Sequence record: NC_061443.1
Strand: one strand, 5' to 3'
Length of the DNA: 64,000 bases
Under the pieces are notes generated by a model that saw nothing but the letters and a program-made list of their open reading frames with translations, had not been told where the DNA came from and ran no database searches. Position numbers and translations under genes: made by a program. Positions 21,491 to 62,327 of this stretch are shown piece by piece. Within the stretch, counting starts at the first letter, position 1; the number at the start of each line of letters is the position of its first letter.

Positions 21491-21780
21491 TAGCCAAATC
21501 TCACGTTAGAACTACCGTTAGAGGCAGTGTCACCACAACTGTTACCATCACCTGCACGTTGCGCAGACTTACCGTTAACACGCACACTCGAACTGGATGT
21601 AGCCTTACCTGTATGGGGTGGCTTATCTTTCTTCCAGTGAGGCATGTACGAGTCACCCTGTCTAACGCTACCCTTTCCATTGACTAGCACGTTAGCAGAT
21701 GCTTGGGCTGCGACAACAGGGAAGTAACCGTTGTGTCCGGTAGACTTGTCTGTGCCTAGTCGAATAGCTTTCTGTCCCAT
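21490..21780 (-). CDS. PAAR-repeat spike tip protein
   Basis: AIRLGTDKSTGH...SANVLVNGKGSVRQGD...H...SSSVRVNGKSAQRAGD...CGD...GSSNVRFG. ATG at 21780 has a GAGGAG RBS (track start is 21804). Confidence 0.85.
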   Translation of the reverse strand: MGQKAIRLGTDKSTGHNGYFPVVAAQASANVLVNGKGSVRQGDSYMPHWKKDKPPHTGKATSSSSVRVNGKSAQRAGDGNSCGDTASNGSSNVRFG

Positions 21781-21802
21781 GATTATCTCCTCTGTTAGAC
21801 AC

Positions 21803-21810
21803 AAATTAGC
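21803..21810 (-). promoter_or_regulatory. GCTAATTT motif, putative late promoter
   Basis: 23 nt upstream of the PAAR ATG and just downstream of a terminator. Confidence 0.5.
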
Positions 21811-21826
21811 TTGTTAAGCCGCAGAA

Positions 21827-21856
21827 ACAAAAACGGGCAGCCTAATGGCCACCCAG
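21827..21856 (-). terminator. intrinsic terminator
   Basis: GGGTGGCC-ATTA-GGCTGCCC followed by GTTTTTGTTT on the minus strand. Confidence 0.65.
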
Positions 21857-21890
21857 TTTCTGTACGCTTGGATTTTGTGTCGTCGCTCCC

Positions 21891-22034
21891 TTACGCCCGA
21901 TGCAAGTGCCCGTCAGCTTTCGCTGGTGAGCCGGAGTGAGTAACAAACAGGTTAACATCATGAGGCCTGTTTGACCATGCAAGCAATAGACCAAACATCG
22001 CTATCGCTAACATCGACACTAAGAACAAAAGCAT
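21891..22034 (-). CDS. small membrane protein, 47 aa (absent from ORF track)
   Basis: AAGGAG 6 nt before ATG 22034; MLLFLVSMLAIAMFGLLLAWSNRPHDVNLFVTHSGSPAKADGHLHRA* with a hydrophobic N-terminus. Confidence 0.6.
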   Translation of the reverse strand: MLLFLVSMLAIAMFGLLLAWSNRPHDVNLFVTHSGSPAKADGHLHRA

Positions 22035-22049
22035 GTTTCGCTCCTTGTG

Positions 22050-23085
22050 TCATACTTTAAGAACTTACGTTTGATCGACGGTTACTTTATTCTGCTCATT
22101 GCCCAACATCACTTGAGTTTCAGAACGTTTCTCTATCTTTACCGCCTACGGTGCGGAAGGCCGCGCACAACACTCACATATCAAGGACACTCGGCGGAAA
22201 AGGGAAGTTCCGAATGCCCTAACAACATGAGTGAAGCGAAGGAGGTCCCGTATCGGTGATCTGCAGGGGTTCATGCACGTTTAACATTCGCTTCTTTGTG
22301 CGTTAAACCCTCTAGGACCCGAATGCCCTGCTAATCATTCCACGAGGATATTGCACACCTTAGTGAACAAGGTTTCAAGCTATGGCAGTACGTCAACAGT
22401 CAACAGCAGCGGACACACTCCACTGCAATCTGTTAAGGGCAGAATGCAGCAGGCTGTGAACAGCTCGGCCGGAATAGGTTTCGCTCGTCGCCCAACTTCA
22501 CTTGAGTATCTCGACCTAGACTTTTACTCTCCACGCGAACTACAAGGAGGTGCTCACGTTTCTGTGGCCTGCGGATGTTTATCACTCTCAGACTCTTTGC
22601 TCCTGTCTGGAAATTAACACGCTGAGTCGTCCGCTGGATGACGTGTTAACTCTCCTCACCTCGTCAGTACGAAAGGCCAGAACAGGTGCCGATGGAATTG
22701 TCATGAAGGAATCCCTGGGGGTCATCGCTTCCCAATGCACACAGGATGATCGCCTATGCACATCAGGCAGCGTCTGCTGCGATACTGCTATTCCCTACTA
22801 GACTGCCCACAATGTTGAGAACACACTCCAACAGTCTACGTGCCTAAGAGGTATATGCCGTGCCTATGTCTGTATTCAGCATGGTTCCATTGCTGGGCCT
22901 TCTGGGCGTCAGCGACAGAGCATATATCTATCACGTGGGTGCCGGGGTTGTCCTCACGATTACAGAGCGTTAACTCAAACCGGCTGGAGGCTTGCATGTT
23001 CAAAGATACACATGCAAGTTTGGTTAACAGCGAAGGCCGCTATGACACTTCGTTGTCAGACATATTGATATTACTATCTGCAATT
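22050..23085 (-). ncRNA. putative large structured non-coding RNA / regulatory region (family unknown)
   Basis: Only ~1 kb gap without a >=60-aa minus-strand ORF in the window; many hairpins, an internal 28-nt imperfect repeat and a downstream terminator. Strand inferred from context. Confidence 0.45.
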
Positions 23086-23099
23086 TTTATTTACAGATT

Positions 23100-24863
23100 T
23101 CAAAATACTTTTCGTTCCACATTCGAATAATAAGTTTCGTATGGGTCAGAGTACAACTCAGGACCACGTTGAGCACGTACAGTCACGTAACCCGTGTGGC
23201 GATTGAATGCAATGATTTCTACTGTAGGCTGTTTAGGCTTGATGGTCGCATAAATCGGAGCGTTCATTGTTGGTTCGTCTGTCTGAATCTTATTTACAGA
23301 TTTCAGAGCATCGCCTGTCAACGTAGGAAGATTAAATCTGATCTCCGCACGTTTCTGACCAAACGCAATCTTGATAGCCCCTGCAGGCATTTCAACGCCG
23401 TTCTGTTTCATGTACGCACCAATGCGACGAGCGATGCCCGTCAACTGGTCGCGAGTACGTGGGTCGAACGTGCCTTCGAAACTGATTGCTTCATTAGGCT
23501 GGCGTACAGACAGATGCAGACCTGTATTGAAGTAGCCTTCGGCAAGCAGACGCATCACTTCCTTCACGATTTCTTTCGTGTTAGATTTGATTGCTGCGAT
23601 ACGCAACTCAGGCACATCAGCTTTCACAGGGTCTTTGAGTTCTGTCTGGTTATCCATGTAGCCGAGTGATACGTGCTTCGCTTTGGCATACGTGTGCTGG
23701 AGAACGCCAGTAGCGCGAATCAGTACCGAGCCAGACTTAGACTGATCGTACAGTTCATCGCTGGTGGTTGTGCTGAACAGGTAATAGTCTGTAGGCACGG
23801 CCATGCGATTGACAGCTTCGACCGCTTTAGTCTGCGCTTCTTTCACTGTCTTGCCGAATACGACACGACTGCGGTTAGGCTGCGAGGCCGATACAGGGAA
23901 GAATGCGCCGTACACAACCTGCACGTTCTTTTGAATAGGCTTATCAGACTGAACTTTGATACCACCTTTAAGAGGTGGCAGTTTCATGCCCACCAGCTTA
24001 CCACTAACGATTGCTTTGTTAGCGACAACAGGTTTCAGACCGGACAGCAGTTTCTGCAACTCAGCGCCGTCAAGAATCTTCTCCAGCGGAACAGCGAGGT
24101 TCTGCGGCAGATAGTGTTTCTTGCGGAACGAGTAGATAACGGTGTCTTTCTTGATCTGCAACGGTGTAGCCATGTTGCGACCAATCTGACCAACAGGCGC
24201 GAATGTGTTGCTCTTGTCGTCTGCGATAGACCCGTACGCTTTAGGGAACTCTGACTGACCGATGATGTTTGCAACACGCTGGTGGCCACGAACGATGAAG
24301 ATAATCTTCGGGTCGTCCTTCATGCGCAGTTCATAACGATCTCGGTTGAGATACGTCATGCTGTACTTGTCGCCTTTTTCCAGCTCAAGGTCGTATTCAT
24401 CGTTGGCATCATCGACAACAACTTTCTTACCCTGATAGGTTGCGTACTGACGAGCAGGCGCGGAGGTCGAAGCGATCTCCATTGCTTTGCCTGTGTTAGA
24501 CAGCGCAACGGCGAAGTCAGCCACGGCAGGCATCAGGTCAACAGCAGAGGCAACCGCGTAGCTACTGCGATGCTCACCGAGATGCAGATGCACGGCAGAG
24601 GACGCAGACATGAATACAGTGTTACCTGTGTCTTCATGTTTACCTGCGAAGTTCATGCCGCTAATGCGTTCGATGATGTTTGCGCTTAACGCAGGGAAAG
24701 AGATATCACTACCAGCAGTGAAGTCGAAGATCTCACCCTGACGCCATGCGTAGGCAACGTTGTTAGAACTAAGTCCGATAAACGCATCGCCGACCTGTTT
24801 AACAGTCATCGGCATAATACTCAAGTCACGAATGACTGAGTTTTGCTTTTGAATAAGATTCAT
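23100..24863 (-). CDS. hypothetical protein (candidate internal head protein; carries shared ~70-aa domain)
   Basis: 587-aa ORF; contains YQGKK...LEKGDKYSM...Y.L..KDDPKIIF segment shared with three other ORFs. Confidence 0.7.
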   Translation of the reverse strand: MNLIQKQNSVIRDLSIMPMTVKQVGDAFIGLSSNNVAYAWRQGEIFDFTAGSDISFPALSANIIERISGMNFAGKHEDTGNTVFMSASSAVHLHLGEHRSSYAVASAVDLMPAVADFAVALSNTGKAMEIASTSAPARQYATYQGKKVVVDDANDEYDLELEKGDKYSMTYLNRDRYELRMKDDPKIIFIVRGHQRVANIIGQSEFPKAYGSIADDKSNTFAPVGQIGRNMATPLQIKKDTVIYSFRKKHYLPQNLAVPLEKILDGAELQKLLSGLKPVVANKAIVSGKLVGMKLPPLKGGIKVQSDKPIQKNVQVVYGAFFPVSASQPNRSRVVFGKTVKEAQTKAVEAVNRMAVPTDYYLFSTTTSDELYDQSKSGSVLIRATGVLQHTYAKAKHVSLGYMDNQTELKDPVKADVPELRIAAIKSNTKEIVKEVMRLLAEGYFNTGLHLSVRQPNEAISFEGTFDPRTRDQLTGIARRIGAYMKQNGVEMPAGAIKIAFGQKRAEIRFNLPTLTGDALKSVNKIQTDEPTMNAPIYATIKPKQPTVEIIAFNRHTGYVTVRAQRGPELYSDPYETYYSNVERKVF

Positions 24864-61541: not shown

Positions 61542-62327
61542 TCACTCCATTACCAGATAGGTTACAGTGAGTTTCGGTTTCGATGGTGATGTACCGATAT
61601 TCTTCATACGCCACGAAATCGTAGGCGAGTTGTCTTTGTTGGACAAGAAGCTATATCGACGCAGCTTACGAATAACAGGATTACCCTCGCTATCCACATC
61701 TGTGAACACGCCATCATCTTCGAGGAAATTAGCAGTGGAGCGGAATAAATACGGGTTTCTGTCATCTCGTTGTGCGGTAGGGAACGCAGAGAGTTCCACG
61801 TCAAACGCATTGAGTTGGACAGACAGCAACATCACCGTACGGTTCATCTGCAAGTCAAAGTCAACCTGCTGTCCCGGAGTGATGTAGGCAGGAGATTCAT
61901 ACTCCACCGTCTTACGCACACCTGCACTTTCATTGCCACTCAAGTCAGCCCAGAACATCGTACCGTTAGCACCAGACACTAGGGTCATACCCGCGTATTC
62001 AGGTTCAGGCACTTGCTTACTTGGGTCGAGGCCTACAACAGTCAGACCTGTTTCATCCACAGCGGTGACGAATGGCGATTCGAACTTATACTCCGAGCCA
62101 CCAAACTTCGCTTCTTCCCACGTCACGTTGTCAGCACCAAGTTGATACATCTTCTTGGTCTCGGTGACGTAACACAACATCCCAGGCTTTTTATTACCTA
62201 CGGACATTGCATCACGTAACGCGAGTGTAGCAAGACAACGCATACCCCCACGAAGATATACGTCTTCGAGGAGGTATGGAAGCGCTGCGGATGCTGGCAA
62301 CAGGAACGAAGTCATGTATACCGGCAT
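61542..62327 (-). CDS. fibre-associated structural protein
   Basis: N-terminal LRGGMRCLATLALRDAM...GMLCYVTETKKMYQL module of a type common at fibre N-termini. Confidence 0.55.
   Translation of the reverse strand: MPVYMTSFLLPASAALPYLLEDVYLRGGMRCLATLALRDAMSVGNKKPGMLCYVTETKKMYQLGADNVTWEEAKFGGSEYKFESPFVTAVDETGLTVVGLDPSKQVPEPEYAGMTLVSGANGTMFWADLSGNESAGVRKTVEYESPAYITPGQQVDFDLQMNRTVMLLSVQLNAFDVELSAFPTAQRDDRNPYLFRSTANFLEDDGVFTDVDSEGNPVIRKLRRYSFLSNKDNSPTISWRMKNIGTSPSKPKLTVTYLVME

Follow-up and report, generated by a model that had tools for sequence, protein, structure and literature searches.

What occupies the one long gap in a jumbo-phage genome whose genes are otherwise tightly packed? The window analyzed here, a 64,000-nucleotide (nt) stretch of sequence record NC_061443.1, belongs to the Erwinia phage pEa_SNUABM_2 (Alexandravirus; MZ443786, 265,442 bp), and its position 1 is record position 62,001. 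All annotated genes of the window are on the minus strand, and both the annotation and the list of open reading frames (ORFs) place them less than 100 nt apart over all 64 kb, with the sole exception of positions 22035-23099 (1,065 nt). The longest minus-strand ORF within this gap has 57 amino acids (aa); a 47-aa ORF (21891-22034) and a 587-aa gene (23100-24863) flank it. Over record positions 12-265 kb it is the largest unannotated stretch, the runner-up being 623 nt. An earlier note on this DNA had described positions 22050-23085 as the only kilobase-scale gap, free of minus-strand ORFs of 60 aa or more, and had proposed that a large structured RNA is encoded there. Its description of the gap was accurate, and we are nearly certain that a conserved structured RNA of ∼1.24 kb exists on the minus strand at ∼21826-23066. 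The limits given in that note were too narrow: the unit spans ∼21826-23066 plus an upstream box that reaches to 23099.

Conservation gave the first line of evidence. The relatives compared were 14 Alexandravirus and related isolates, phage Y3, and contigs from IMG/VR and metagenomes; individual loci are cited below by L numbers. The interval from the 587-aa gene to the gene for the PAAR protein measures 1,267-1,465 nt in every relative in which it is complete. Nucleotide identity of the gap to the window ranges from 0.93 to 0.58, versus 0.74 to 0.51 at third codon positions when the 587-aa gene is compared between the same genomes, and the PAAR and 140-aa genes have third-position identities similar to those of the 587-aa gene. 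Change in the gap is thus slower than at nearly neutral sites, indicating purifying selection. Conservation is patchy, with blocks of 85-98% identity alternating with variable, indel-rich blocks. Across 14 genomes, substitutions in the gap show no three-base periodicity and no reading frame stays open; pairwise indels are mostly of length 1 mod 3 (1,932 of 2,743), and a PHROGs search with eight separate ORF pieces from the gap gave no match at E<0.05. Because periodicity is absent and indels are mostly of 1 nt, we conclude that the gap is non-coding. Only the small ORF at the 3′ end of the unit shows protein-coding features.

The decisive evidence is comparative. A consensus fold was computed with RNAalifold from 16 non-redundant sequences (alignment A3; minus strand, window 21823-23076) bounded by the TAGTAATATC box and the terminator. 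It contains 266 pairs at -257.6 kcal/mol, and 142 of them are compensatory: at least one sequence has changes in both partners and still pairs. Thirty column shuffles that kept gap pattern and conservation class, each refolded, reached -73 ± 7.4 kcal/mol (z about -25) and 18 ± 3.5 compensatory pairs (maximum, 25), versus 145 counted for the real alignment in this comparison (z about +36). When the 3′ partners were moved by 1 to 3 columns, 35-43% of cells remained paired, versus 95.4% in the structure itself. Even nested long-range helices up to 400 nt apart covary. The opposite strand's own consensus fold reaches -145 kcal/mol, and the minus-strand structure mirrored onto the plus strand is canonical in 81.9% of cells versus 95.4%, since G-U turns into C-A. 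This asymmetry indicates selection on the RNA of the gene strand rather than on DNA. Purifying selection beyond that on synonymous sites, the lack of a coding signature, and compensatory pairs far above shuffled and slid controls together bear out the large structured RNA that the earlier note had proposed.

From 5′ to 3′, the unit and its upstream box are made up of the following elements.

23067..23099, minus strand: invariant 33-nt box, from AATCTGTAAAT (start) to TAGTAATATC (end), abutting the stop codon of the 587-aa gene.
23021..23062, minus strand: 5′ stem-loop, a hairpin of 8-14 bp in 16 of 16 sequences, with stem sequences that are lineage-specific and unrelated.
22992..23017, minus strand: helix H3, CTTGCATGT/ACATGCAAG, with 8 of 8 pairs compensatory.
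22800..22990, minus strand: 5′ domain, H4-H9, with the invariant CCUCCAGC; 46 consensus pairs, 22 of them compensatory.
22702..22798, minus strand: 5′ arm of H10 and hairpin H13 (CCUGAUG...CAUUGGG), the first copy of a paired hairpin.
22611..22652, minus strand: hairpin H16+H17, TTAACACG/CGTGTTAA around TCGTCC/GGATGA; 10 of 10 H16 pairs compensatory.
22466..22586, minus strand: module 1, a three-way element scored at 97 bits by its covariance model, R1.
22415..22457, minus strand: hairpin H25, the second CCUG...UGG copy, resembling H13; 15 pairs, 8 compensatory.
22307..22349, minus strand: hairpin H26; 10 pairs, 7 compensatory.
22089..22292, minus strand: module 2, paralogous to module 1, with a long hairpin insertion (H27-H34) and the invariant GCAGAUCACCGAU, CCUCCUUCGC, and AGGCGGUAAA.
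21891..22034, minus strand: small ORF (47 aa) behind an AAGGAG; its N-terminal segment is hydrophobic.
21866..21997, minus strand: 3′ RNA domain, H37-H41, with compensatory changes, overlapping the tail of the ORF.
21826..21860, minus strand: intrinsic terminator: a stem of 9 bp, six of them GC, plus a U tract; the PAAR start codon lies 46 nt downstream.

Four stems had been singled out in the earlier note, and they fared differently. The stem at 22991-23018 is H3 and the one at 22614-22649 is H16+H17, both with the full compensatory support given above; one H16 pair is seen as CG, UA, GC, AU, and GU. The GCTG-TGAA-CAGC hairpin (22453-22464) exists but is nearly invariant, and the consensus fold pairs it over a long range with 22787-22794. 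The long imperfect stem at 22266-22310 is retained in part only, as H27 and H28. In the consensus, the long-range helix H10 joins 22787-22794 to 22458-22464 and encloses H13, H16/H17, and module 1. The 5′ domain is highly conserved in sequence, even in L029, L030, and L033.

The fold also contains an internal duplication. A direct repeat of 28 nt, 86% identical, recurs 389 nt apart, and a profile hidden Markov model of module 1 detects module 2 in nearly all genomes. R1 covers module 2 over its full length, with a long insertion, in L004 (E 4e-8) and L033 (E 7e-8); within module 2 of the window, the module-1 model matches 22090-22125 (E 0.0055). A second model, R2, built on the H13 region, finds second matches at the place of H25 in L033 (E 0.0017) and L049 (E 0.00068) and a weaker one in the window (E 0.07). 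The direct repeat and these cross-matches define the repeated unit as a CCUG...UGG hairpin plus a three-way module. Both modules share a 3-bp hairpin with a 9-10-nt loop, a CCUCCUU or UUCCUU element, a GUAAA(A/G) junction, and the nearly invariant hairpin CUCAAGUGAAGUUGGGCGACGAG. In module 1 these parts are the 3-bp hairpin with the loop AUAAACAUC, the pyrimidine loop CCUCCUUG, a GUAAAAG junction, and CUCAAGUGAAGUUGGGCGACGAG, which is invariant there. When 29 module copies were aligned to R1, 91.3% of cells were paired versus 70.5% in shuffles (0 of 500 as high) and 24-42% in slid controls, and 22 of the 27 pairs change on both sides. No further module copies were found in the rest of the genome (253 kb searched).

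One natural variant bears on this duplication. The contig JAVWLC010000001 (34.7 kb) is filed as a Raoultibacter sp. metagenome-assembled genome (MAG) and is evidently a mis-binned jumbo-phage contig, with a homologue of the 587-aa protein that is 73% identical. Its copy of the RNA (L049:6837-7855) is shortened by ∼260 nt and lacks profile positions 354-611, that is, H16-H24 including module 1; H13, both arms of H10, and module 2 are retained. One unit is thus dispensable in nature, and the deletion respects the predicted domain boundary.

At its 3′ end the unit carries a small ORF. An ORF of 47-53 codons is kept in all relatives whose 3′ part is available, all of its indels are multiples of 3, and its end lies within two codons of one point, except that the SNUABM34 type runs 3 codons beyond. 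Most copies have an AAGGAG or AGGAG site. Differences in the first 22 codons fall mostly on codon positions 1 and 3 (647/300/710 at positions 1, 2, and 3), which is coding-like; those in the tail (1274/1485/1516) show no bias, and the tail lies within covarying helices. The first 19 residues have a mean hydropathy of 2.67, and the Shine-Dalgarno sequence and start codon are in the loop of helix H35. No family match was found for the small ORF. It probably encodes a real single-pass membrane peptide, with a tail region that doubles as RNA structure; coding and structural constraints seem to overlap in this ORF. The 3′ domain, recognizable also in L034, L042, L043, and L040, is probably closed by the invariant GCUUGG...CCAAGC, judging from complementarity. 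The terminator reported earlier below the gap was recovered by a terminator scan at 21855-21834 with its U tract; its stem covaries and is retained across all genera. Additional sequence of ∼125 nt, which includes an ORF of ∼41 codons, is inserted between terminator and PAAR gene in AD1 (L004:1855-2000), SNUABM_33 (L005:1852-1980), SNUABM_3 (L009:1857-1979), and L033:3810-3945; the window lacks it.

The 33-nt box at the other end is invariant or nearly so in 20 relatives, and phages of the Yoloswag, SNUABM_5, and JA types retain its core, AAATCTGTAAAT. Where the locus is of the Yoloswag/SNUABM_5 type (L042, L043, and L034), a terminator hairpin of the upstream 587-aa gene precedes the box core, which speaks for transcription as a unit of its own, as do the 5′ hairpin of all 16 sequences and the terminator at the end. 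At Yoloswag-type loci, the hairpins behind the 587-aa gene escaped a simple terminator scan and were revealed by folding. The box may be a promoter or the 5′ edge of the RNA unit. In SNUABM_16 and 22, a 76-nt insertion separates the stop codon of the 587-aa gene from the box. One piece of the box, ATCTGTAAAT, has an exact second copy at 23292-23301 on the minus strand, 203 nt upstream of the box. This copy falls in the 3′-terminal part of the 587-aa gene and codes for a portion of a conserved SVNK motif; the box is otherwise unique in the window. JA-type phages likewise have two ATCTGTAAAT copies, ∼110 nt apart.

How far does the RNA reach beyond Alexandravirus? The 587-aa gene is strictly syntenic with it down to 42% identity. 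R1 and R2 elements in the same order, just downstream of a 587-aa homologue (42-51% identical), are present in L043, L042, and L034. In SNUABM_5 (Rivsvirus, L043) R1 matches at E 2e-6 and R2 at only E 0.12; R2 also matches L035 (E 7e-8), Yoloswag (Yoloswagvirus, L042; E 3e-5), the metagenomic L034 (E 1.5e-4), and L049 (E 1e-8). The JA-like metagenomic contigs L035, L038, and L040 gave a weaker signal. The fold of the Yoloswag-type trio has a z of -7.1 against shuffles. Their RNA measures ∼650-700 nt; several small annotated genes come next, and after these the 3′ domain, the small ORF, and the terminator. A DNA-level search of a phage collection returned matches only in Erwinia and Dickeya phages. 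An exact 31-nt match to a module-2 motif in a Terracidiphilus MAG (L048:1811-1841) was rejected as chance; it lies in a GC-rich coding region with no other similarity.

Is this a known RNA? The check proposed in the earlier note, a cmscan run against Rfam 15, returned no matches at gathering thresholds for the whole window, and at E values up to 10 the region 21700-23300 gave only a chance hit to mir-2066 (23.6 bits versus a gathering score of 100). We found no mention of this RNA in the literature, nor a transcriptome of these phages. As far as these checks reach, the suggestion that the RNA is new holds: it matches no Rfam 15 family, GOLLD and ROOL included. Models for OLE, HEARO, raiA, introns, ribozymes, riboswitches, T-box, RNase P, tmRNA, packaging RNA (pRNA), and rRNA likewise gave no Rfam match, and a hammerhead reading of the CUGAUG in H13, seen by eye, was rejected with no hammerhead model match.

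The nearest likeness is to the large RNAs. GOLLD, at ∼800 nt, is shorter than this RNA. Like GOLLD and ROOL, and also OLE, HEARO, and raiA, the RNA is of the kilobase class, multi-domain, and heavy in covariation; with GOLLD and ROOL it further shares being phage-borne, with no enzyme or guide function evident from sequence. GOLLD, ROOL, and OLE are RNA-only homo-oligomers by cryo-electron microscopy (cryo-EM) (PMC12286853). Unlike GOLLD and ROOL, which in phage and prophage genomes often lie near tRNA genes, the RNA described here has no tRNA genes nearby (none was detected by ARAGORN in the window plus another 189 kb, together 95% of the genome), occurs in lytic Erwinia and Dickeya jumbo phages, and contains an internally duplicated unit and an embedded small ORF. 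Judged from sequence comparison, it founds a family of its own among the "large ornate RNAs" and differs from every described member in sequence, fold, host group, duplication, and small ORF.

Smaller systems share single traits with it. SgrS/SgrT, SR1/SR1P, and staphylococcal RNAIII are dual-function RNAs of 200-500 nt that encode a small peptide and, as structured regulators, base-pair with known targets. As in these, one transcript here would combine an extensive conserved fold with a short ORF, and here part of the ORF itself is in covarying helices; unlike in these, the fold is several times larger. The mRNAs of type I toxin-antitoxin systems are ∼0.15-0.4 kb long. With those of the hok/sok type the RNA shares a small hydrophobic peptide, a type I toxin feature found in its ORF, on a highly folded mRNA, and here, too, long-range pairing might control how accessible the ribosome-binding site is. 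Unlike them, the unit is 1.24 kb, has no evident antisense RNA gene, and keeps its anti-Shine-Dalgarno-like element independently of the Shine-Dalgarno sequence. The phi29 prohead (packaging) RNA, ∼170 nt and part of a virion-assembly machine, is also a phage-encoded structural RNA, and the locus studied here adjoins virion genes. Its neighbors here are baseplate and not packaging genes, unlike those of phi29 pRNA, and the pRNA family in Rfam is without a match.

What might such an RNA do? It would form a separate transcription unit that begins at the invariant box next to the upstream stop codon. The product would most likely be a stand-alone, trans-acting RNA, a scaffold whose duplicated modules would serve as binding platforms for a phage or host protein or RNA during infection. 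The always-adjacent 587-aa protein would be the first candidate partner. The same transcript would also be the mRNA for the small peptide, making it a dual-function RNA. We give about an even chance to this reading, a stand-alone scaffold or ribonucleoprotein RNA with the peptide as a second product of the transcript. We favor it because size and ornateness far exceed those of known leaders, because the pyrimidine element persists in phages whose ORF no longer has a ribosome-binding site, because other genes separate RNA and ORF in related genera, and because a whole unit was lost without loss of the rest. A bolder version, to which we lean somewhat less, would make it the first representative of a novel class of giant RNAs in phages, trans-acting and possibly oligomerizing or catalytic, or the RNA core of a particle with the 587-aa protein. 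Its duplicated modules would act in late infection of lytic jumbo phages, and it would not be a peptide leader; on this form our tentative assessment falls a little short of even.

Several observations weigh against a stand-alone RNA. The single window sequence folds only marginally better than dinucleotide shuffles, the comparison suggested at the outset (z -1.89, with 1 of 20 shuffles as good; antisense z +0.37), so that single-sequence thermodynamics alone is inconclusive, and the covariation statistics come from our own shuffles and are not phylogeny-aware as those of R-scape are. The 33-nt box contains no sigma-70 consensus; it and its sub-motifs do not recur upstream of other genes, so it is not a recurring phage motif. 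In Alexandravirus no terminator lies between the 587-aa gene and the RNA, and the RNA could thus simply be a 3′ extension of the 587-aa mRNA. The candidate partner is itself without a recognizable fold or family. Finally, a conserved ORF with a Shine-Dalgarno sequence and a hydrophobic N terminus follows directly downstream on the same strand, before the only terminator.

That last point also speaks for a cis-acting leader, in which the 1-kb fold would be a giant 5′ untranslated region timing translation of the small membrane peptide. The peptide might be holin-like or a type I toxin-like peptide directed at the bacterial host, and CCUCCUU, which is complementary to the AAGGAG of the ORF, might mask it until a signal or processing event; the position of the Shine-Dalgarno sequence and start codon in the H35 loop is in keeping with such control. 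Against this stand a 1-kb length, more than 30 covarying helices, and a duplicated module; to our knowledge, no leader of comparable size exists. CCUCCUU is invariant in SNUABM_3, SNUABM_34, and L026, where AAGGAG is lost. Yoloswag and SNUABM_5 have three to six annotated small genes between RNA and ORF, and L049 has dispensed with one whole unit and kept the rest. We regard a leader, the main rival, as unlikely.

A decoy or sponge RNA is less probable again. Such an RNA would serve host takeover or counter-defense, its duplicated hairpins sequestering ribosome-binding sites, a nuclease, or an RNA-binding protein of the host. The invariant ACCUCCUUCGC in the junction and UUCCUUG/CCUCCUUG in the module-1 hairpin loop would suit this role, as would repeated modules, which are typical of sponge RNAs, and the location of a lytic-phage RNA beside early or middle metabolism genes. 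By eye, and as a lead only, we take GCAGAUCACC...CCUCCUU (module 2, 22236-22264) and CACCUCCUUG (module 1, 22540-22552) to resemble the 3′ end of 16S rRNA (anti-Shine-Dalgarno); no rRNA model matched these elements. GGA motifs, however, are not enriched (15 versus 18.6 expected in 1,042 nt), and a sponge of the CsrA/RsmA type (CsrB/RsmB) is therefore rejected. No defense-related neighbor was found, the pyrimidine loop of module 1 is not conserved in L033 and L007, and the decoy is a sub-case of the stand-alone RNA, inseparable from it by sequence alone.

The remaining explanations, at the level of DNA or of coding, are effectively excluded. A large, gene-free, repeat-containing region at a gene-module border invites the thought of a replication origin, packaging site, or recombination hotspot with inverted repeats conserved as DNA; the strand asymmetry of the fold, which is the signature of RNA selection, the covarying nested long-range helices, and the absence of a break in composition or GC skew at the gap make it very improbable. 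A decayed or unconventionally decoded protein gene (pseudogene, frameshifted, or intron-interrupted) has in its favor a gene-sized gap in which several annotators called short ORFs in relatives, but with no periodicity, 1-nt indels, no shared open frame, no PHROG match, no intron or ribozyme model, and conservation above that of synonymous sites, which is unexpected for decay, it is the least credible of all.

The genes around the RNA add context. Upstream of the gap lie genes for a NUDIX hydrolase, an MmcB-like protein, dTMP kinase, a 144-aa product, and the uncharacterized 587-aa protein; on the other side come the PAAR spike tip and then gp25-like and gp6-like baseplate genes. The gap had been placed inside the virion module; it is instead the border between the nucleotide-metabolism and baseplate gene modules. 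The 587-aa protein (23100-24863, minus strand) belongs to PHROG 32352. It matched nothing in NCBIfam, PADLOC, or the PDB sequences, and an AlphaFold model of low confidence (pLDDT 71.5, pTM 0.34) gave no Foldseek match at E<0.001. As promoter motifs, TATAAATA and TGTAAATA are not enriched.

Outside the window, pEa_SNUABM_2 has further unannotated stretches of 623 nt (L054:7930-8551, record 233929-234552), 473 nt (177857-178330), and 393 nt (183750-184143). An R1 search of these three gave no match; R2 has one weak match near the 623-nt gap, at L054:8872-8930 (E 0.14), just outside it. In relatives, "hypothetical protein" calls fall within the gap in pEa_SNUABM_16 (L013:2816-3380), 22 (L014:2903-3379), 35 (L002:2638-2799), 17 (L006:2798-2947), and 32 (L007:3194-3337). 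These short ORFs annotated within the RNA gene, some on one strand and some on the other, lack conservation and are probably spurious.

Conserved, intricate RNAs of more than ∼500 nt are very rare outside rRNA, RNase P, and introns. OLE, GOLLD, ROOL, HEARO, and raiA each opened a line of work, and GOLLD and ROOL form RNA-only cages. Annotation is corrected here in more than 40 phage genomes, some of which have spurious short ORFs inside the RNA gene. The RNA is carried by lytic, plaque-forming phages of Erwinia amylovora and Dickeya solani that are in culture, with dozens of sequenced isolates at 58-99% identity and one natural variant without a whole unit. Unlike for classes derived from metagenomes, genetics, transcriptome sequencing (RNA-seq), pull-downs, and cryo-EM are thus immediately feasible for this RNA.

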